A stretch of 20,151 nucleotides of DNA from Paramoeba atlantica (taxonomy: Eukaryota; Protista; Discosea). The position numbers and the translations under genes are program-made. The notes beneath the pieces were generated by a model, which was given only the letters and a program-made list of their open reading frames with translations, was not told where the DNA came from and made no database searches. The stretch is taken from positions 1-20,151 of the forward strand of contig CDRNVI010000214.1 in NCBI GenBank assembly GCA_977017575.1, read 5' to 3'. Positions 2,893 through 20,151 of this stretch are shown here, one piece after another. The number at the start of each line of letters is the position of its first letter. Position 1 is the stretch's first letter.

Positions 2893-4539
2893 TCACTTGG
2901 AGAAAACAAAGTTACCCGACATATTAAAAGATTGAGAAGGAGGAGCCCCGAAAGAAAAGAAATTGTTTGGTTGTTGTGGAGCAAGTGCTGTCGCGGGTTG
3001 TTGTTGTGGTTGTTGTTCAAAGACATTCTCATCCTCTCCTTCAAAGTACTCCTCCAAAAGTTTGGAAGCAATCTCGTGAATCTTCAATTGGGAATGGTTT
3101 TGGAGCTCTTCAATCGCCTCAAGTCCCCCATTCGATTCCATCTCAAGAGCATAAGGATTTGTTTGGTTGGTCTTCGCATTCGCAAGAGTATCACCAACAC
3201 CCATAATCTTCTCAACAGCCTCAAGACAAATGATCAAAAGTTTGGTGTCTTTGTTCGACAAGAATTCAACGATAACCTTCAAACAACCGGCTTGGACCAT
3301 ACGAATGATTTGTTCACTTGTTCCACCGGAGATCGCATTGGTCACTGCCCAAGCAGCTTCTTTTCGAATTTCAAACTCACCCTCCGAACAAAGGGCAATC
3401 AAACGAGAAAGAAACTCGCCGTTCATAATCGCATCAATTTGGGGGGTTGTTCCAGCAGTCACATTCGAAAGAGCCCAGACACATTCTTTGAGCATATTAC
3501 GGTTTGTTTGAGTGTCCATGATGTGTTCAATCGCTTCAAGACCACCGAGGTCGATCACAGCTTGAGTCTGATATTGAGTTCCGGTGACAAGATTTCCGAC
3601 AGTTCGAAGAGCAGGGGTCAAAACAGATGTATTGTCAAGGTAAAGCAAATCAATTAATCGGGGAACAAGACCTTCTTCAATCACAGCTTGCAATTTGTGG
3701 TCTTCACCGTCAGTCAAGTAAGAGAGAGCCCAGCATGCATCACCAAGAACATCTTCATCATCAAGGTTCAACAATCGATAAAGAACACCCAAACATTTTT
3801 TGATACGTGTAAAGTTAGGGGCAGGTTTCCCACGAACCAAATTGGATAAAGTCCAAGTTCCATTGCAGAGGAAAGATTTGTTTGTTGTAGTTTGGAGATT
3901 GTGAAGAAGAGGTTCAAGCGCATTACAAGACAACACATAGTCACGACACTGACAAGAATCACCAGCAATATTTCCAAGAGCCCAAGTAGCTTGTTCTCGA
4001 TTCTCCAAACTCTCCGCATTGGCAGACATCGCGACAAAAGCGGGAACAGCACCAGCGTCAATCACACACTTGGTATGGTCCGAAGTTCCAGAAGCAATGT
4101 TTGTTAAAGCCCAAGCTGCCTCAAATTGGATATCCTTATGAGGAACGCCCAAAAGTTCGACAAATCGATGAACAATCCCACTCGCAATCACAATATCAAT
4201 TGGAGGTTTGGATTCACGAGAGAGGATCTTCCGAATTGATCGAACACCAACAAGAACTTCATTGGGATCAGAGGAACGACTGAGAGAGATAAAACGAGAA
4301 AGGTCAGCATCAGCCTCAGTGGACATCAAAAAAGCATCTTCAGCAGATCGAGGAGCCACAGATGTGGAGGAAGATTCCTCATCGAAAGTGATGTTTCGTC
4401 TCTTCAAAGCCAACTCTTCGCGTTTGTTCTTTCGGATTGAAGCGTGTTTGTCCTCCCTTCTTCGACGAGAATCGGTAACATCAATTCCTTTCTTGAACGC
4501 CTTCCTCCTCTCGTCTTGTTTTGCTCGAACAGACATCAT
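2893..4539 (-). CDS. KPNA: Importin subunit alpha (karyopherin alpha), single exon, about 548 aa
   Basis: N-terminal IBB domain (ERRKAFKKG..SRRRRED...IRKNKREE.ALKRRN) followed by ARM repeats (QFEAAWALTNIASG, EQATWALGNIAGD, DACWALSYLTDG, KECVWALSNVTAG, KEAAWAVTNAISGG) and an acidic/aromatic tail. The start is taken at ATG ATG 4539/4536 rather than the track's non-ATG start at 4575. Confidence 0.96.
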   Translation of the reverse strand: MMSVRAKQDERRKAFKKGIDVTDSRRRREDKHASIRKNKREELALKRRNITFDEESSSTSVAPRSAEDAFLMSTEADADLSRFISLSRSSDPNEVLVGVRSIRKILSRESKPPIDIVIASGIVHRFVELLGVPHKDIQFEAAWALTNIASGTSDHTKCVIDAGAVPAFVAMSANAESLENREQATWALGNIAGDSCQCRDYVLSCNALEPLLHNLQTTTNKSFLCNGTWTLSNLVRGKPAPNFTRIKKCLGVLYRLLNLDDEDVLGDACWALSYLTDGEDHKLQAVIEEGLVPRLIDLLYLDNTSVLTPALRTVGNLVTGTQYQTQAVIDLGGLEAIEHIMDTQTNRNMLKECVWALSNVTAGTTPQIDAIMNGEFLSRLIALCSEGEFEIRKEAAWAVTNAISGGTSEQIIRMVQAGCLKVIVEFLSNKDTKLLIICLEAVEKIMGVGDTLANAKTNQTNPYALEMESNGGLEAIEELQNHSQLKIHEIASKLLEEYFEGEDENVFEQQPQQQPATALAPQQPNNFFSFGAPPSQSFNMSGNFVFSK

Positions 4540-4899
4540 TTTTAATACTTCTAACTTCGAAATCGACTGGTTCAAAAAAAAGTTTTCTGGTTTTTTTGTA
4601 AGAAAAGTTCACAACAAAAAGAAAAAGTGAAAATGTTGTTTTTTTTGAAAAAGACGTTTTTGGGCAAAAGTAACGGCCAGTCGCCCCACGGAAAGGAATT
4701 AATATCTCAAAGTATCAAAAAAAAGTTTTTTAACTGTATAGTTTTTGAACACTCTTCAAATTCAAATTTCAGTTTTTTAGACCTAAAAATCATACTTTCG
4801 ACTTTTCTTTCTAAAACACACCTCACCGCTTTCAAAAAAACACAAACCACCAACAAACAACAACATCAACTCTTCTTTCTATCCTTTCTCTCGAAAAAG
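4540..4899. promoter_or_regulatory. Probable bidirectional promoter between importin-alpha and bL20m
   Basis: The two starts diverge across 360 nt. A GC-richer island (GTAACGGCCAGTCGCCCCACGGAAAGG, about 4669-4697) sits inside AT-rich sequence. Function is inferred from geometry only. Confidence 0.45.
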
Positions 4900-6565: not shown

Positions 6566-7096
6566 CAATTCAATAACGCTCTTTGGGCTTTTCAGGAAGG
6601 TGATTTGGGAACTGTAAATCAAACCGAAAATCGTTCTTCGTTTTTGGCACCCCACATCTCTTTGAAAAGGAAACAGAATTCTTTTCACCAACAACTTGTG
6701 GAGTTGGAGTCTCAAGAAAATACGTGTTGGGTCCTTGGACAAAAAAGGATTCATTCAAGGGGGAACTTTCGACTCACCCAAAAGTGTGGTGCGAGGACCT
6801 TTTTTGAAACCATTTTCCCAAACCAAAAGAACATCTTTCTTGTTTTTGAAGGTGTGAAATCCTCATCAAGACATAAAAATATTTATTCCTCCTAAAAATT
6901 TGAAGAAAATAAAATTTGTTCCTCCCAAAAAGCAAAGCGAACCAAACACCGAAACGATTTTGCTTTTGCTTTTTCCCTTTTTCCCTCTTTTTCCCTCTTT
7001 TTTCCCTCTTTCCTTTTTTCCTTTTTCCCTTTTTGTGTTGGTGTGTTGAGGTGAGGTGACAGAAGAGTGGTGTGGTTCTCAGAGGGTGTGGTGGTG

Positions 7097-8299
7097 ATGA
7101 AGATCAATTATCGTCCCCCAAACCCCCTTTCCCTTGTTGTTTGCTTTCTTCTTCTTTTCTGGATCTCTTTTCTCTTTTCTCCGGTTTCCTCTTCCATATC
7201 TTTTGTTCCTAATGTGATGAACTTTTCTCTTCTTGCCTTTGAGAGTGGAGAAAGGGGTTTTGTCGTTGAAAGAACCTATCAAAGAAAAAAATTTCCTCGT
7301 TTGGCTGTGTTCTTGTTTCATACAACCTCAAGTTTGGAACTTGCTTCGATTCAATTCTCAGCTCTGGTTGATGCTCTTCAAAAAGGCAAAGTGGACTTAT
7401 CTGATGTTTCGATTGAGATTTGGGTTCAGACTAACCGTGAAAGAGAAGCTGTTGAGAAGACTTTGAATTTATCAACATCGAAAATGATGAGACCTCCTCC
7501 TCCTCAGACATTCATCACAACATACCCTCCTTCCGACACTGTTCATCCATCGGAAAGACATGCTGACATCGTAAACTCAGCTTTCCAACGCCGAGGGGGT
7601 TCTTATCTTCTCAACAATACTGCTGTTCTTTTGTTGGATGGTGATATGATCCCAATTTCTCCTTTATCTTTCTCAAATTTATATCTTGGAGACTATCCTA
7701 TCACTTGTTCCAGCAAAAGCACATACTCTCAGGCGCCCGTCCAGCAGCGATATTTTTGTTGGGTTGGATGGATATTGCTGTTCCCAGAACTTGATGAAAC
7801 GATCATCAAAAATTTCTCTGTTTCGACAGGGACAGGTGGAGATACTGGATATGAAACTCTGCAAGTGACTGATATTGTGGGGTTGAATTGGATGAGAAAG
7901 ACTCGCATTCCTCCTAAAATTCGATTTGTCGACGGTGTTCTTGACCAAGACATTAAGTGGATTTCAAAGAAGTCGAAATATGCTCACAAATGTTATTTTG
8001 GTCAAATTTACTCGGTTGGAGATTCACACTTTTATCATATGGGATCTGCAGCTTCAACATGGAAGTTTTCACAAATTTCAATGCGATACAAAGATCTGCA
8101 AGAAAAATTGAATGACAAGAGAATTTCACAGTTTATAATTGATGACATGAAGACAGTTTCTAGTTTGGCTCCAGAGTTACTTGGTTATCCTTATGGACCT
8201 TGTAATCACAAATTTTGTTGTGAAGTGAATGACAAAAAATCACTTAAGATTCAAAGAAAAAAAACTGATTCTGCTGACTCAGAAAAAACCTTGAATTAA
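7097..8299 (+). CDS. Type II membrane protein, putative GT-A fold glycosyltransferase, single exon, 400 aa
   Basis: ATG at 7097; N-terminal hydrophobic anchor (LSLVVCFLLLFWISFLF); beta-strand + DXD motif (VLLLDGDMIPI); later GGDTG and FYHMGS motifs as expected for a nucleotide-sugar-binding GT-A fold. Family not assignable. Confidence 0.65.
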   Translation: MKINYRPPNPLSLVVCFLLLFWISFLFSPVSSSISFVPNVMNFSLLAFESGERGFVVERTYQRKKFPRLAVFLFHTTSSLELASIQFSALVDALQKGKVDLSDVSIEIWVQTNREREAVEKTLNLSTSKMMRPPPPQTFITTYPPSDTVHPSERHADIVNSAFQRRGGSYLLNNTAVLLLDGDMIPISPLSFSNLYLGDYPITCSSKSTYSQAPVQQRYFCWVGWILLFPELDETIIKNFSVSTGTGGDTGYETLQVTDIVGLNWMRKTRIPPKIRFVDGVLDQDIKWISKKSKYAHKCYFGQIYSVGDSHFYHMGSAASTWKFSQISMRYKDLQEKLNDKRISQFIIDDMKTVSSLAPELLGYPYGPCNHKFCCEVNDKKSLKIQRKKTDSADSEKTLN

Positions 8300-9598: not shown

Positions 9599-11434
9599 AT
9601 GGAAGAAGAAGAAGAAACTCCAAATGAAGAAACAAAGAAACTATTTGATGGTGTCGAAAAGGGAGATGAAGAACTTGTCAAAGTTCTTCTTGGAAAAGAA
9701 AACAAACAATTCAAACTTGATCTCAACTTCCAATCCAAAGACAAGGTTTTTTTTTTCTTCAAAGCCTTTCTCTCTTCTCTTTTCTTTTTTCCCCTCTCCT
9801 CTTTGTTCTCCTTTCTCCTCTCTTGTTTACCTTTTTTTAAAACTTCTTTTTGGCAAGTGGGGATGGACTGCTCTTCACTTGGCTGCTCAGAAAGGTTTTG
9901 AAGAAATTGTGAAGATTCTTCTTGAACATGGATCCAATGTTGATCTTCAAAATAATGTTTTGATTTTCATTTTTTTTCTTCCCATTTTTATTTGTTGTTG
10001 TTAATTCTTTTGGTTGTTCCTGTTTTGATGAGTTGTGTGATATTTATTTTATTTTTTTCTTTTTTAACAATTTTAATTTGTTAAGTATGAAGAGACCGCT
10101 CTTCACTTAGCTGCTAAGCATGGTTTCAAAGAAGTTGTAACAATTCTTCTTGAACATGGATCCAATATGCATCATCGAGAAAGAGTTTTGATTTTTTTTT
10201 TTTTCATTTTTTATTTGTTGTGGTTCATTCTTGGTTGTTCCTGTTTTGATGTGATATTTATTTTGTTTTGATCTTTTTTGAACAATTTCAATTTGTTTCA
10301 GTGGGGAGAGGCTGCTCTTCATTTAGCCACGAAAAAAGGTTTTGAAGAAATTGTGAAGATTCTCATTGAACATGGATCCAATGTTGATCTTCAAACCAAT
10401 GTTTTGATTTTTCTTTGTTTTCTTTGTTGTGGTTAATTCTTAGTTGTTCATGTTGTTTTGGTGGTTGTGATAATTTATTTTGTTCTTTTTTAACAACTTC
10501 TTTTTGTTAAGAATGGCTGGATCGCTCTTCACTTTGCTGCTTTAACTGGAAAAGAAGAAATTGTGAAGTTTCTTCTTGAACATGGATCCAATGTTGATCT
10601 TCAAAGCATGGTTTGAACAATCTTTTTTTGTTTTCTCATTTTGATTTGTTGTGATTCATTCTTGGTTGTTCATGTTGGTTGTTGATGTGTTGTGTGATAT
10701 TGATTTTATTATTTTTTTAACAATTTCTTTTTGTTCAGTGGGGAGAGACCGCTCTTCACATGGCTGCTCAGCGTGGTTTCAAAGAAATTGTAACAATTCT
10801 TCTTGAACAGGGATGCAATATTTATCTTCAAGATACAGTTTTGATTTTTTTCTTTTCTCATTTTTATTTGTTATGGTTCATTCTTGGTTGTTCATGTTGG
10901 TTGTTGATGTGTTTGTGTGTGATGTTTTATTTTATTTTGTTCTTTTTTTAACAACTTCTTTTTGTTCAGAAAGGCTGGACTGCTCTTCACTTTGCTGCTG
11001 AAAATGATTTTGAAGAAATTGTAAAGATTCTTCTTGAACATGGACCCAATGTTCATCTTCAAACTAAAGTTTTGATTTTCTCTTTTTTTGAGTAAAATAA
11101 CAAAACTGTTGATTGTTCTTTATTATGTTTGGGGAGGGAGTTGTGGAATGGTTCTTTTTTTTTTTTGATCTTTCTTTTTTGTTAGAAAGGGAAAATAGCT
11201 TTAGATGTTGCAAAAGATGAAAGAATTGTTCAACTGATCACCACATTTCAAGAAAGGGTTTTGATTTCTTTTTTCTTTTTCTTTTTACCATATTTTTCTC
11301 CTTTTTCTTTTTCCATTTTTCATTTTTCAGATTTTTTTTAAATTTGGTACATTTTTTTTTGTTTGTATTTTCTTTTTTTGTTTGTACAGGGCAAAAATAT
11401 CAAACCAGCGGTTCAAAAAAAAAATGAAAACTGA
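9599..11434 (+). CDS. Ankyrin-repeat protein ANK-A (N-cap + 6 repeats + C-cap + tail), 285 aa
   Basis: Exons 9599-9745, six 99-nt exons (9858-9956, 10086-10184, 10302-10400, 10512-10610, 10739-10837, 10970-11068), 11186-11257 and 11390-11434. All introns are phase 0. The repeats read xGxTALHxAAxxGxxEIVxILLEHGxNVxLQ. Confidence 0.93.
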
Positions 11435-12438: not shown

Positions 12439-13269
12439 TTAATTTTCTTTTTTTATTTGAGCTGGTTTGATTGTTCGTCCCTACAAACCAAAAAGAAAAA
12501 CAACATGAGAATTGAAAGAAAAAATGCCAAAAAAAGAAGAGAGAGAAAAAAATGAAACCTTCAATTGGATGATGGATTCAACAATGCTCTGATCTTTTGC
12601 AACATCAAGGACTGTTTCACCAGCCTAATAAGAAAAAGAAAGAAAAGAAAGTATAAGAACCACTCCAACCCCATCCTTCTCCTCAATTCTCCCAATTTCC
12701 CCACCCTCCCACAATCCAACAAGTCAATAAATCAAAAAAAGAAAATCAAAACTTCATTTTGAAGATGAATACTGGCTCCATGTTCAATCAGAATCTCCAC
12801 AATTTCTTTTGAACCTTTCTTAGCAGCAAAGTGAAGAGCGGTCCATCCTTCCTTAACAAAAAGAAGTTGTTAAAAGAATAAAACAAAATAACTCTCACAC
12901 AACTCTCTTTCAAAAAAAAATAAAAATCAAATCAAAACTTTATCTTGAAGATCAACATTGGGTCCATGTCCAACAAGAATCTTCACAATTCCTTCTTTTC
13001 CAGTGAAAGCAGCAAAGTGAAGGACAGTCCATCCAAACTTAACAAAAAGAAGTTTGAGAAAAAAGGGGGAGAGAGAAAGATAAAAAAAAGGAAAAGAGAG
13101 AAAAAAGGTTCCAAAAAAAAACCATCTTTTTGAATTGAAAGTTGAGATCAAGTTTGAATTGTTTGTTTTCTTTGCCAAGAAGAACTTTGACAAGTTCTTC
13201 ATCTCCTTGAAGAATAGCATCAAATAGTTTCTTTGATTCTTCATTTGGAGTTTCTTCTTCTTCTTCCAT
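12439..13269 (-). CDS. Ankyrin-repeat protein ANK-B (N-cap + 2 repeats + C-cap + tail), 150 aa
   Basis: Exons 13269-13123, 13037-12939, 12851-12753, 12624-12559 and 12480-12439; all phase 0; open frame ending GRTIKPAQIKKEN*. Confidence 0.9.
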
Positions 13270-13542: not shown

Positions 13543-15482
13543 TTAATTTTCTTTTTTTATTTGAGCTGGTTTGATTGTTCGTCCCTACAAACCAAAAAGA
13601 AAAAAAATATGAGATCATTCTAGACTCAATTAATATTCAACAAAAAAAACTTAAAAAGAAAATTGAGAATTGAAAGAAAAAGAGAAAAAATGTTAAAAAA
13701 AGAAGAGAAAAAAAATGAAACCTTCAATTGGGTGATGAATTCAACAATGCTCTGACTTTTTGCAACATCAAGGACTGTTTCACCAGCCTAATAAAAGAAA
13801 GAAAAGAAAGTATAAGAACCACTCCAACCCCATCCTTCTCCTCAATTCTCCCAATTTCCCCATCCTCCCACAATCCAACAAGTCAATAAATCAAAAAAAG
13901 AAAATCAAAACTTCATTTTGAAGATGAATACTGGCTCCATGTTCAATCAGAATCTCCACAATTTCTTTCGAACCTTTCTTAGCAGCAAAGTGAAGAGCGG
14001 TATCTCCATACTTAACAAAAAGAAGTTGTTAAAAGAATAAATAAAATCTCACACTAAAAATGAGGAAATCAAAACTTTAGTTTGAAGATGAATACTGGCT
14101 CCATGTTCAATCAGAATCTCCACAATTTCTTTCGAACCTTTCTTAGCAGCAAAGTGAAGAGCGGTATCTCTATACTTAACAAAAAGAAGTTGTTAAAAGA
14201 ATAAATAAAATCTCACACTAAAAATGAGGAAATCAAAACTTCATCTTGAAGATCAACATTGGATCCATGTTCAATCAGAATCTCCACAATTTCTTTCGAA
14301 CCTTTCTTAGCAGCAAAGTGAAGAGCGGTATCTCCATACTTAACAAAAAGAAGTTGTTAAAAGAATAAATAAAATCTCACACTAAAAATGAGGAAATCAA
14401 AACTTCATTTTGAAGATGAATACTGGCTCCATGTTCAATCAGAATCTCCACAATTTCTTTCGAACCTTTCTTAGCAGCAAAGTGAAGAGCGGTATCTCTA
14501 TGCTTAACAAAAAGAAGTTGTTAAAAGAATAAATAAAATCTCACACTAAAAATGAGGAAATCAAAACTTCATTTCGAAGATGAATACTGGCTCCATGTTC
14601 AATCAGAATCTCCACAATTTCTTTCGAACCTTTCTTAGCAGCAAAGTGAAGAGCGGTCTCTCCATACTTAACAAAAAGAAGTTGTTAAAAGAATAAAACA
14701 AAATCTCACACTAAAAATGAGGAAATCAAAACTTTAGTTTGAAGATGAATACTGGCTCCATGTTCAATCAGAATCTTCACAGCTTCTTCAAAACCTTTCT
14801 CAGCAGCACAGTGAAGAGCGGTCCAGCCATCCTTAACAAAAAGAAGTTGTTCAAAAAGAAAAAAACAAAATCTCACACAAACACATCAGAATAAACAAAA
14901 AAAACAACCAAGAATGAACAACAACGAAAACAAAATCAAAAAAAAAGGAAATCAAAACTTTAGTTGGAAGATCAACAAAGGATCCACATTCAAGAAGAAT
15001 CTTCATAATTTCTTGAAAATCTTGGTTCGCAGCACAGTGAAGAGCGGTCCAGCCATCCTTAACAAAAAGAAGTTGTTAAAAGAATAAAACAAAATAACTC
15101 TCACACAACTCTCTTTCAAAAAAAAAATAAAAATCAAATCAAAACTTTATCTTGAAGATCAACATTGGGTCCATGTCCAACAAGAATCTTCACAATTCCT
15201 TCTTTTCCAGTGAAAGCAGCCAAGTGAAGAACAGTCCATCCAAACTTAACAAAAAGAAGTTTGAGAAAAAAGGGGGAGAGAGAAAGATAAAAAAAAGGAA
15301 AAGAGAGAAGAAAAAAGGTTCCAAAAAAAAACCATCTTTTTGAATTGAAAGTTGAGATCAAGTTTGAATTGTTTGTTTTCTTTTCCAAGAAGAAGAACTT
15401 CAACAAGTGCTTCATCTCCCTTCTCTACACCATCAAATAGTTTCTTTGTTTCTTCATTTGGAGTTTCTTCTTCTTCTTCCAT
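13543..15482 (-). CDS. Ankyrin-repeat protein ANK-C (N-cap + 8 repeats + C-cap + tail), 349 aa
   Basis: Exons 15482-15333, eight 99-nt exons (15244-15146, 15057-14959, 14831-14733, 14666-14568, 14502-14404, 14338-14240, 14174-14076, 14010-13912), 13787-13722 and 13584-13543; all phase 0; open frame. Confidence 0.92.
13912..14732 (-). repeat. Five tandem 164-bp units (99-nt ankyrin exon + 65-nt intron)
   Basis: Exon starts at 14010, 14174, 14338, 14502 and 14666 (period 164). Four introns are identical; the fifth is 66 nt with 1-2 changes. Confidence 0.97.
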
Positions 15483-15835: not shown

Positions 15836-15880
15836 TCTCTCTCTCTCTCTCTTTTCTCTCTCTTTCTCTCTCTCTCTCTC
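15836..15880. repeat. (CT)n microsatellite
   Basis: Interrupted CT dinucleotide run. Confidence 0.85.
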
Positions 15881-16265: not shown

Positions 16266-16551
16266 ATGGATCCAGTTCGATCATCTGAGAGAATGAGAGA
16301 AGAAGAAGAAGAAAGAAGAGAAAAAAGAAGAGAAAAAAGAAGAGAAAAAAGAAGAGAAAAAAGAAGAGAAAAAAGAAGAGAAAAAAGAAGAGAAAAAAGG
16401 AACCCTTAAAAGAAAACGAACTGCCTCTCAGGCACCTGACCCCCCCCAACCTGTCCTGTCACCAGAACCAGACAGCCCTCTCCATGTTGACCATTGTGAA
16501 ACAACTGATGATGATGATGACATCTGCATGGTGGCAGAAATTCTGCCCTGA
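16266..16551 (+). pseudogene. Possible frameshifted small ORF (MDPVRSSERMREEEEE / KEEKKEE...GTLKRKRTASQAPDPPQP...DDDDDICMVAEILP*)
   Basis: The ATG-16266 frame stops at 16409. The +1 frame is open from 16297 to 16551 and reads like a disordered protein with a KRKR basic patch, but has no start of its own. Confidence 0.3.
16312..16392 (+). repeat. 12-nt minisatellite (AAAAAAGAAGAG) x6 plus a partial unit
   Basis: Exact units from 16321 to 16392; they encode KKEE or REKR depending on frame. Confidence 0.95.
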
Positions 16552-17988
16552 ATTCCACCCCGAATTCCTCCAAACCCATCACCTCCATGAAAAAGAACCT
16601 GTTTTTTGGAAGCTGGGAATGCGATGCTCTTCTCCACTTTCTCCTCTCTTGTGAAAAAGAAAGAGAAGCCAAAAAAAGAGATGTGGTCACGAATTTGATT
16701 GGTTATTTGGGGGTGTGAAAATGATCAATTAACCTTTTTTTCAATTTTAAATTTTCAATAAAAAATTCTGTTTGTGGATTTTTCAAAAAAGTTGGTGAGA
16801 ATAAAATCAACTGGAATGAAACCTGAGCTTGTGATGAACAGTTTTTGTGGATCTGTAAATTGGGGGTAAGGGAGGTGTGGAATTTGGATCAGTTTCTTGA
16901 ACTTTGTGAGAAATGATTATAAACTTCCTCATGATAGGGGATTATAATTTTTGTCAAGATCATTGATTCCTCAAGGCCAAATAAACTGGGAAAACAGAGA
17001 ATGATTTATTATTGTGAAGAGATTGCTTTGTGACAACCCTCACAATAAGATGACTGCATTGTTGGTTCAGTGTAAGTTCAGTGAAGATGTGAATGTCAAA
17101 AAGGAATGTATGCATTGTTCATCATATGGAATATTCAGTGAATTGTCAGACTTCAATGCTTCCCCCTATTCCTGTGATTGAACAATGTGTTCAGAGTCAC
17201 ACATACAGAAGGATAATTTCATGTCTTTATCCAGCTAAGAGATGCCATCTGTTCAGAAATGGACTTATAACTTTCCTGCCTTTGTTTCCTGCACTGGGTC
17301 AATGCCTTTATGCACTCTATTGTTTATGAATTCAAAGAAAAGAGAAGCCATCAGTTTCATCATATGTTTCATTGTATGCTTCTTGTATAAGATTCATCAT
17401 TTCATTCTCAGTTTCAGGTTCTTCTTTTTGTTTTTCTTGTTTGTCTTCTGCAAAACCCTTTCTAAAAGCTTTGTCAATCCTTTTTTGAATTGTTTCTTCC
17501 ATTTGGGCTCTCCAGGGTGCATCATGATTAGAAAGATGGAAACCAAGCTTTTCATCAGCTCATTGAATACTGCATTTGAATCAAGAGTGTTCTAATTTAC
17601 AATAATATTGGCAAATATGTTTGTTGAGTTTGTTTCAATTTTTCCCACCAATTCAAAGAATAGAGTCAGAAGGTTGAGAGAAGGAGGATGAAAATCATTT
17701 GGTGAGTTTTCTTGCATTTGTGATATTGTATTGTTTATTTACAATCAAATTTTAACAAACACCTTCAAGGGAATTAGGGAAAGCTTTGAGGAGATGAAGG
17801 AAACAAATGTTGTTGTCTTGGGGCAGTTCAATAGCACAAAGGCAGTTTACAAGAAATCAAAGTGAATGAGAAATGATCCTACATCTTCACCTCCTTTGTG
17901 TTAAAATTAATAAACTTTTCATTAAGATCAAGTTGGTTAGAAAGTGTGTTTCAATTAAACTTGATTTGTATGTGGTTTCAATGTCAGA

Positions 17989-18640
17989 TTGTGAAAGTGT
18001 TTCAACTTTTGAAGATGCTTCTTGATTTGGTGTTGTTTTGTTGTTTCCTCTATATTTTTCTAATTAAAGAGTGTTTTGTTTTGTTCAAATTTGTGTTTCA
18101 TCATAAGCTTGGTTTGTATTGCTTTTGTTGTACTTTGAGCAGAAGTTGTAGAAATCATAGTAAATTTAGGAGATTTAAACTGAACTGTTTTTTGGTTCCC
18201 TTTGTATTAATAGTAGAGATGCACCACTCTATACTTTTTTTTTGAAAGTTTGCTTTGCTTCTATGTTTTGATTCTTTTTCCATTTATTTTTAGTTGTACA
18301 TTAGCTGTGAGTAATGATATTTCTATGTTGCTTTATTTTCAAGAGGAAATGTTTTGGTTAGGTCTTCTTATAAGGATGTGGGAAGATGTGAGGGAAAGAG
18401 ACTTTAATTATATTTTTTCTTGAGTAATGTTTTTCCTATTATTTTCCTTAAATTTGTACTATGAGATTTTTTATTTTCAGAAGAAAACAGAAAATAGTTA
18501 TTGTTGAATGAATTTTCTACTTGATGTGAGTGTTGGAAGATCTTGTTTAGAAAATAGTAGTGTAGGTAGGTGTTAGGTTGTGAAAGTATTTTAACTTTTG
18601 AAGATGTTTCTTGATTTGGTATTGTTTTGTTGTTTCCTCT
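17989..18640. repeat. Dispersed 63-bp direct repeat (17989-18051 and 18578-18640)
   Basis: TTGTGAAAGT.TTT.AACTTTTGAAGATG.TTCTTGATTTGGT.TTGTTTTGTTGTTTCCTCT; four mismatches, all transitions. Confidence 0.9.
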
Positions 18641-18970
18641 GTGTTTCCCTTGTAAAATGATAGATTTTACAGTGAATAATAAAAGCAATTAAAATGTTGT
18701 TGTGCAATTTGAGAATTTGAAAAATGAACATTGGACTGTTTCAGAAATTGGTGGTTCCACATCAGCACTCATTTTCCTTTATTTAATAAATCAAAAAAAT
18801 ATAAATGTCTTTATCAAGGAGTTGTTGATTTCTCTGTTGCATCCTCCCACATGGTACAAGCAGCAAAGTTGATAGTTGCTGTTGTTCAAAAGTTGCTTCA
18901 ACTTTTCATCAACCCTTATCCTTTTAAAACAACACAAAAACAATGCAATTCTTTTTGTTAAAAAGAAAAA

Positions 18971-19088
18971 ACTTTTTTTGAGACTTTGATGACTAAATAA
19001 TAAGAGTTATTTTGAAGTTGTTGAAAAAAACTTTTTTTGAGATTTTGATGACTAGATAATAAGAGTTGTTTTGAAGTTGTCAAAAAAA
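18971..19088. repeat. Telomere-adjacent tandem duplication, 59-bp period, two copies
   Basis: ACTTTTTTTGAGA.TTTGATGACTA.ATAATAAGAGTT.TTTTGAAGTTGT at 18971 and 19030; five mismatches, all transitions. Confidence 0.92.
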
Positions 19089-19212
19089 AGAAAATTGATT
19101 TTTAATTCATTCCAAAATTCTTTTTTTTATTTTTTCCATTGCTTTCTCTTCTTCTTTTTTCCCTGCCACTTCTAATCTCAGGAGGAAGACAATCAACTTT
19201 TCAATTTCTCTC

Positions 19213-20151
19213 TTAGGGTTTAGGGTTTAGGGTTTAGGGTTTAGGGTTTAGGGTTTAGGGTTTAGGGTTTAGGGTTTAGGGTTTAGGGTTTAGGGTTTAG
19301 GGTTTAGGGTTTAGGGTTTAGGGTTTAGGGTTTAGGGTTTAGGGTTTAGGGTTTAGGGTTTAGGGTTTAGGGTTTAGGGTTTAGGGTTTAGGGTTTAGGG
19401 TTTAGGGTTTAGGGTTTAGGGTTTAGGGTTTAGGGTTTAGGGTTTAGGGTTTAGGGTTTAGGGTTTAGGGTTTAGGGTTTAGGGTTTAGGGTTTAGGGTT
19501 TAGGGTTTAGGGTTTAGGGTTTAGGGTTTAGGGTTTAGGGTTTAGGGTTTAGGGTTTAGGGTTTAGGGTTTAGGGTTTAGGGTTTAGGGTTTAGGGTTTA
19601 GGGTTTAGGGTTTAGGGTTTAGGGTTTAGGGTTTAGGGTTTAGGGTTTAGGGTTTAGGGTTTAGGGTTTAGGGTTTAGGGTTTAGGGTTTAGGGTTTAGG
19701 GTTTAGGGTTTAGGGTTTAGGGTTTAGGGTTTAGGGTTTAGGGTTTAGGGTTTAGGGTTTAGGGTTTAGGGTTTAGGGTTTAGGGTTTAGGGTTTAGGGT
19801 TTAGGGTTTAGGGTTTAGGGTTTAGGGTTTAGGGTTTAGGGTTTAGGGTTTAGGGTTTAGGGTTTAGGGTTTAGGGTTTAGGGTTTAGGGTTTAGGGTTT
19901 AGGGTTTAGGGTTTAGGGTTTAGGGTTTAGGGTTTAGGGTTTAGGGTTTAGGGTTTAGGGTTTAGGGTTTAGGGTTTAGGGTTTAGGGTTTAGGGTTTAG
20001 GGTTTAGGGTTTAGGGTTTAGGGTTTAGGGTTTAGGGTTTAGGGTTTAGGGTTTAGGGTTTAGGGTTTAGGGTTTAGGGTTTTAGGGTTTAGGGTTTAGG
20101 GTTTAGGGTTTAGGGTTTAGGGTTTAGGGTTTAGGGTTTTTAGGGTTTAGG
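19213..20151 (+). repeat. Telomeric array (TTTAGGG)n, about 134 units, G-rich strand running towards the end
   Basis: Uninterrupted TTTAGGG heptamers to the window end. Only two T-length variants occur (near 20080 and 20140). The orientation is that of a right chromosome end. Confidence 0.99.

Follow-up and report, generated by a model that had tools for sequence, protein, structure and literature searches.

Hypervariable arrays of near-identical ANK, TPR or WD repeats, which vary in number within a gene and are exchanged within and between family members, are carried by the NOD-like receptors (NLRs) of fungi (Dyrka et al. 2014, PMC4986451). Concerted evolution of fungal repeats was reported by Paoletti et al. 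2007, as far as that work is cited in PMC4986451, and recombination gives false positives in site tests (Dyrka et al., PMC4986451). In the brown alga Ectocarpus, the LRR and TPR candidate receptors have one repeat of constant length per phase-0 exon, and exons are gained, lost and shuffled in large, fast-evolving families (Zambounis et al. 2012, PMC3341825).

The locus described here is an ankyrin-repeat gene of Paramoeba atlantica, termed gene A. With the fungal NLR arrays it shares internal repeat identity, variation in repeat number and exchange among members. The fungal proteins, however, have a NOD (NACHT/NB-ARC) and an N-terminal effector, whereas gene A encodes only caps and repeats. 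Its cap exons have no Pfam match, and neither NACHT/NB-ARC nor an effector domain was found in the gene, which has no room for one; gene A is therefore not an NLR. Unlike in the fungal arrays, each repeat of gene A is an exon of its own with a co-amplified intron, and the host is a protist with (TTTAGGG)n telomeres. As in Ectocarpus, the exons of this family are phase 0, constant in length (99 nt, with AG before and GT after) and encode one repeat each. The Ectocarpus repeats are LRR or TPR, found together with ROCO or NB-ARC, whereas here the repeat is ankyrin and there is no partner domain; the pieces that move here are both complete exon-intron units and sub-exonic patches of ~20-75 nt. Judged from its sequence, the gene A family appears to work like both of these groups of arrays while belonging to neither. 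A literature search found no description of the family.

Two further comparisons are useful. The designed ankyrin proteins known as DARPins resemble gene A in having a small N-cap, n repeats of 33 residues and a C-cap, but they are designed, whereas the repeats of gene A are natural and inherited. Interlocus gene conversion that mimics positive selection is the same general phenomenon as the case reported here, and nothing essential is different: patches imported from diverged paralogues inflate the apparent non-synonymous divergence between young duplicates. The youngest part of gene A provides a clear case of patch copying that imitates divergence of the 'only amino-acid-changing' kind, and adds a dated snapshot with bounded conversion tracts.

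Organization of the locus

The window, i.e. the whole stretch of DNA that was analysed, is the complete contig C214 (20,151 nt) from an assembly of 45.7 Mb in 248 contigs. It is AT-rich (G+C ~29-43%) and bears no sign of being human DNA, and the repeat array of gene A lies ~4.5 kb from the telomere repeat. On the minus strand, gene A looks like an intact ankyrin-repeat gene with a predicted product of ~349 residues. It starts with an N-cap exon, continues with eight exons of one repeat each and ends with a C-cap and a tail exon; every intron is GT..AG and phase 0. The features are as follows.

15333-15482, minus strand: gene A N-terminal cap exon, 50 codons, phase 0, ATG at 15482-15480 (sequence reading)
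15146-15244, minus strand: gene A ankyrin exon 1, F-type, with 2 differences from the gene B exon 12939-13037
14959-15057, minus strand: gene A ankyrin exon 2; the upstream 50 nt of intron are those upstream of the gene B K-type exon
14733-14831, minus strand: U0, an older hybrid ankyrin exon (Pfam Ank, 40.9 bits)
14667-14732, minus strand: fifth array intron (66 nt), which has the ancestral form
13912-14666, minus strand: five K-type units, E1-E5, with 99-nt exons and four 65-nt introns; the youngest part of the array
14568-14666, minus strand: exon E1
14404-14502, minus strand: exon E2
14240-14338, minus strand: exon E3
14076-14174, minus strand: exon E4
13912-14010, minus strand: exon E5
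14503-14567, 14339-14403, 14175-14239 and 14011-14075, minus strand: identical 65-nt introns (GT..AG, phase 0)
13722-13787, minus strand: gene A C-terminal cap exon, 22 codons, with 4 non-synonymous differences from gene B (sequence reading)
13543-13584, minus strand: gene A tail exon, with the stop codon (sequence reading)
12439-13269, minus strand: gene B, paralogue in tandem with gene A, shorter (two repeats), same caps; used as outgroup
13123-13269, minus strand: gene B N-cap
12939-13037 and 12753-12851, minus strand: gene B ankyrin exons
12559-12624, minus strand: gene B C-cap
12439-12480, minus strand: gene B tail
9858-11068, plus strand: convergent family gene, at least five one-repeat exons
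19213-20151, plus strand: telomere repeat (TTTAGGG)n, read as TTAGGGT x ~134 (TRF)

Pfam and PDB searches were carried out with the exons one by one. E1-E5 and U0 scored 37.1-41.2 bits against Pfam Ank PF00023 (cut-off 21.1) and covered profile positions 1-33 or 3-33. The PDB search with the exons gave strong matches to ankyrins and DARPins; the N-cap exon of gene A, searched alone against Pfam, gave none.

Several other features were seen in the window. The last ~2.3 kb before the telomere (16960-19200) consist of pieces that are 85-96% identical to dozens of other contigs, i.e. dispersed or subtelomeric repeats. Directly upstream of gene A, eight copies of a 12-nt unit (AAGAAGAGAAAA) stand in tandem at 16300-16399, and a (TC)23 tract is at 15836-15880. 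At 7067-8299 (plus strand) there is an open frame of 410 codons, without Pfam match. An intronless ORF of 560 codons at 2893-4575 (minus strand) corresponds to importin-alpha, with an IBB domain, 8 Arm repeats and an atypical Arm; it is an ordinary housekeeping gene, 15 kb from the telomere. Purine-rich low-complexity runs are many and occur across the whole contig.

Variation among the five youngest units

The anatomy of the array was read directly from the sequence. TRF gives a period of 164 with 5.9 copies and 94% matches. Pairwise, the exons E1-E5 show 2-8 differences per 99 nt. Eleven sites vary (exon offsets 0, 3, 8, 75, 79, 81, 84, 91, 93, 94 and 96), and at all 11 the change is non-synonymous. 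The variable codons are 1-3 and lie in the range 26-33, and codons 4-25 are identical at the nucleotide level. At the exon start, codon 1 is TAT or CAT, codon 2 GGA or AGA and codon 3 GAT or GAG. Codons 26-29 read TCC AAT GTT GAT in E3 as against GCC AGT ATT CAT in the other four units. At the exon end, codon 31 is CAA or CGA, codon 32 AAT, GAT or ACT, and codon 33 GAA or AAA. Each of the five new hairpin junctions is unlike the others.

What a preliminary description had stated as seen in these units was confirmed: the four 65-nt introns are identical on the minus strand, the central codons agree in all five exons (codons 4-25), the exon starts and ends were given accurately for every unit, and the five exons contain no synonymous difference. 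Its statements on identical introns and on the lack of synonymous differences stand, but the span for which they were made, 13912-14732, also contains the fifth intron, which differs. Compared with the four 65-mers, this intron (14667-14732) shows one G>A substitution and one 1-nt deletion, and its state is that of gene B and of the first inter-repeat intron of gene A. As the fifth intron differs and has the older state, silent changes are present in the recent history of the array. The matching exon of gene B also has a synonymous difference, TCA as against TCG in the E units. The 65-nt intron gave no match in an exact-pattern scan of metagenome contigs.

Origin of each variant

The variants were compared with a family sample of 163 exons (152 unique) from 40 regions and the window; a pattern scan of the genome gave ~202 family exons. 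The features concerned are:

14230-14274, minus strand: maximum extent of the possible conversion in E3, 45 nt that agree exactly with an exon on contig C200; changed sites 14263, 14259, 14257, 14254 and 14245
14078-14080, minus strand: end of E4, with two changed sites; its ACT AAA is also how U0 ends
14499-14502, minus strand: start of E2, CAT AGA (Tyr1His, Gly2Arg), a string unique in the genome
14575, minus strand: CGA in E1 (Gln31Arg), unique in the genome

A 27-mer of E3 is matched exactly at C200:30307-30333, and its first 21 nt are present in about two dozen other exons. Around the changed sites, exact identity extends at most over 45 nt, starting at exon offset 64 and ending at intron +10. 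All five patch states are carried by 13 of 150 distinct family exons, and the patch is the majority family state at its codons. The five differences fall within 19 of 229 nt, for which the chance probability is 1.6e-4. The exact family match, the clustering and the majority state together indicate that the patch was copied from a template. The plus-strand exon 9858-9956 contains TCC AAT GTT GAT CTT CAA and carries four of the five patch states, in agreement with an earlier remark that the sequence behind SNVDLQ occurs in another repeat exon.

The end of E4 equals that of U0 over at least 74 nt. The ACT AAA of U0 is likely the template or the ancestor of the E4 end; the latter was copied or inherited and is no new mutation. 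Templates were therefore observed for 7 of the 11 sites, five in E3 and two in E4. The templated micro-conversion proposed in the preliminary description is supported by these two matches.

The other changes are single. AGA is present in E2 and also in E4, at 14171. GAG (Asp3Glu) in E1, at 14658, is found in 15 of 128 family exons and is ambiguous, i.e. it may be templated or new. For CAT, AGA and CGA no donor was found within 2 mismatches across the 45.7 Mb assembly, and Tyr1His, Gly2Arg and Gln31Arg would be either new transitions or errors. Two of these three unique substitutions alter residues that are near-invariant in the family (Gly2 in 122 of 128 exons, Gln31 in 115 of 128), and both Arg2 units, E2 and E4, score ~4 bits lower against Pfam Ank. 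RIP-like deamination was considered, since all three unique changes are transitions, but was rejected: only Gly2Arg is C>T at CpA (plus strand), and the others are A>G or T>C.

Proposed history of the array

The array was probably formed by very recent amplification through unequal crossover, followed by short gene-conversion patches and three or four point substitutions. The last five repeats of gene A would have arisen very recently by unequal homologous recombination of the 164-nt exon-plus-intron unit. After or during this growth, tracts of ~20-75 nt may have been copied non-reciprocally from other ankyrin exons, replacing the 3' ends, which encode the hairpin, in two units: E3 would have received its end from a paralogue, and E4 from U0, unless it shares it with U0; three or four ordinary point substitutions would have been added. 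The order of the events, the identity of the donors and the recombination mechanism are inferred from the present sequences.

Conserved sequence flanks the variable exon ends. At the start it comprises the last ~25 nt of the preceding intron and, beyond the variable codons, codons 4-10; at the end it comprises codons 20-25 and, beyond the variable codons, the first ~11 nt of the next intron. The conserved framework codons and intron ends would provide flanking homology that could seed short tracts. With homology on both sides of the variable ends, visible patches tend to stay there. That silent and intron differences are lacking among the four newest introns follows from how young the array is and how few independent events it has had. 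E1-E5 are young enough for single events to be readable, namely unit growth, two sub-exonic patches with bounded tracts and three new substitutions.

Do the counts indicate selection?

Counted over the five exons and four introns, the sites available for change are 387 non-synonymous, 108 synonymous and 260 in introns. If the 11 variable sites are taken as independent, the probability that all are non-synonymous is 6e-4. With six or seven events it is 0.018-0.009, and with the new substitutions only it is 0.13 (3 events) or 0.069 (4 events). The increase from 6e-4 to 0.13-0.07 is due to multi-site templated patches being counted as single events and taken out. When the fifth intron is included, two silent events stand beside 3-4 non-synonymous ones, which is compatible with neutrality. 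In simulations of untargeted micro-conversion with random family donors, 14-35% of the visible tracts were without silent or intron change. The only-non-synonymous pattern is real, yet by itself it is no proof of selection. The contrast drawn earlier, of change confined to the exons against the expectation of neutral drift, exists as a pattern, but its weight is reduced to 3-4 independent new events.

Diversifying selection on the beta-hairpin, such that duplicates are kept only if their hairpins differ and neutral changes are too recent, is unlikely to be the main cause. This explanation can draw on the 11 non-synonymous sites in hairpin or loop codons, on five junctions that are all different and on nominal residual P values. 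New substitutions all fall in hairpin codons with P ~0.006-0.001 over all sites, or ~0.02 if framework non-synonymous sites are forbidden; zero silent changes gives a Poisson P of 0.058-0.022; and the per-site S:N of 0:11 in E1-E5 against 10:17 in other young pairs gives a Fisher P of 0.037. All three are post hoc tests, and the first two rest on three or four events. Against selection, 7 of the 11 sites are templated and the remaining 3-4 events give P = 0.13-0.07, while Gly2Arg and Gln31Arg affect conserved residues and the Arg2 units lose ~4 bits. Diversifying selection, the other alternative of the preliminary description, is not demonstrated from these five units: the new changes number three or four, too few for a test, and two of them are at family-conserved residues and not at hypervariable ones.

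A second part of the selection argument concerns ligand contact. The list of randomised DARPin positions is reportedly that of Binz et al. 2003. In the alignment, codons 1, 2, 3, 11, 12, 31, 32 and 33 correspond to DARPin positions 3, 4, 5, 13, 14, 33, 1 and 2. Across the family the hypervariable codons are 1, 3, 8, 11, 12, 32 and 33. Five of these (1, 3, 11, 12 and 33) coincide with positions 3, 5, 13, 14 and 2, which we take to be randomised in DARPins, and this coincidence favours selection. Among the variable codons of E1-E5, 1, 3, 31 and 33 are presumably at randomised (contact-type) positions, 4 of 10, and positions 13 and 14 are invariant; codons 2, 26-29 and 32 belong to the loop framework. 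The changes are thus all in the hairpin/loop segment, as had been claimed, but a focus on the ligand-contacting loop holds only for codons 1, 3, 31 and 33, and the hypervariable helix-1 codons 8, 11 and 12 are constant in E1-E5, which counts against selection as the main cause. The family-wide diversity peaks overlap the variable sites of E1-E5 only partly.

Young pairs, diversity and recombination in the wider family

One 50-nt flank served to select unit pairs, and divergence was then measured in the exon and in the opposite flank. Such pairs show dS of 0.06-0.07, dN of 0.054, other-flank divergence of 0.08-0.09 and dN/dS of 0.8-0.9. Eight other young pairs, in which both flanks are near-identical, have S:N = 10:17 and dN/dS of 0.47. 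This value of about 0.5 speaks against selection, and the presence of silent changes in these pairs means that a rule of no silent change is not general; this outcome of the larger sample is the one that the preliminary description had itself named as refuting its selection reading. A stretch of 8 kb is 99.8% identical between C207:1-8000 and C178:93336-101337 (8 mismatches, 6 gaps), with ten family exons inside; of the 8 mismatches, two fall in a single ankyrin exon and are non-synonymous. Such a stretch points to a haplotig or else to segmental duplication in the very recent past.

Nucleotide diversity in the family is 0.58 at hypervariable codons and ~0.5-0.6 in intron interiors, as against 0.17 at the remaining codons and 0.19 at 4-fold sites. 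The excess of 0.58 over 0.19 is in favour of selection, as is the position of codons 8, 11 and 12 a few bases from near-invariant 4-fold sites, because tract boundaries cannot account for these codons. On the other side, the interiors of introns roughly match the hypervariable codons in diversity, so how large the excess appears varies with the neutral yardstick. At framework 4-fold sites the mean diversity of 0.19 includes several sites below 0.05, far below the intron interiors (163 exons). Silent exon sites, being either homogenised or under constraint, are doubtful as a neutral measure for the family. Diversifying selection across the family as a whole is plausible. The array calls for caution with dN/dS claims at other loci of the family in this genome, and with inferring selection from patchy duplicates.

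Mosaicism of the family was observed directly: in many pairs one 50-nt flank is identical and the other differs by 12-21 edits. A PHI test with site-order permutation detected recombination in the family (P = 0.002-0.014). It was preferred to a Sawyer-type run test, which spatially clustered rate variation would bias.

Assembly artefact and programmed diversification

An error of assembly or polishing, with the array collapsed, expanded or chimeric and some variants being consensus errors or a mixture of haplotypes, is distinctly improbable. The contig is of 20 kb, subtelomeric and repeat-rich, no allelic second copy of the locus was found in the assembly, and the three singleton changes, all transitions, are unique in the genome, which would be in keeping with such an error. 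However, each variant has more than 60 nt of identical context on both sides, so that a context-dependent error would be expected in all units. No variant disrupts the reading frame, AGA occurs in two of the units, and the E3 patch is an exact, real family haplotype. 

In programmed systems such as the lamprey VLR and chicken Ig pseudogene conversion, silent cassettes serve as donors for somatic copying into a single expressed gene. A programmed, hairpin-targeted templated diversification that uses subtelomeric ankyrin exons as donors, possibly somatic or combined with cassette-exon choice, is highly improbable: the short patches on hairpin-coding exon ends with conserved sequence on either side, the many donors at chromosome ends and the identical phase-0 introns, which would make any unit skippable in frame, fit with it, but the donors are exons of apparently intact genes and not silent cassettes, neither somatic variation nor a dedicated enzyme is in evidence in the one consensus assembly, and ordinary ectopic conversion suffices, as simulated untargeted tracts often look alike.

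A related and very speculative idea is that the hairpin exon ends are a preferred target of fast templated patch-copying, possibly in clonal cultures, which together with skippable cassettes would give a rapidly renewable repertoire of ankyrin binders from subtelomeric donors. If the family is a recognition repertoire, the locus would lend itself to measuring, in culture, how fast units are gained and lost and patches are converted.

Comparison of gene A with gene B

Gene A has 8 repeats and gene B 2, and from its parts gene B resembles gene A with six repeats removed or, the other way round, gene A resembles gene B with six added. In the K-type exon of gene B (12753-12851) the body is like that of the E units, and the upstream 50 nt of intron are like those of the gene A exon 14959-15057. 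U0 is a three-part hybrid: its 5' third is like exon 14959-15057, its codons 20-31 are identical to those of the K-type units, and it ends in ACT AAA. A change in unit number by crossover within the conserved framework appears to be directly visible from the gene B exon and the hybrid U0. In the comparison of 12753-12938 with 14959-15145, the whole upstream intron end is common to both, and the junction is in the conserved TALH codons.

Divergence of exons with identity of introns was also considered between genes A and B and was rejected as a general pattern: compared base by base, the genes show two near-identical blocks (~15384-15058 and 14000-13790), and their surroundings are 10-20% diverged. 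As the near-identical blocks lie inside diverged surroundings, the differences in the cap exons mostly mark block edges. Only the C-cap exon shows a marginal excess between the two genes (4/66 vs 1/125, P = 0.049).

Between the N-caps, at 13198-13224 in gene B and 15411-15437 in gene A, 8 bases differ within 12 nt, giving GVEK in B and AILQ in A. No donor for the gene B patch was found within 3 mismatches in the whole assembly. The gene A version is near the family norm, and that of gene B is a dense patch.
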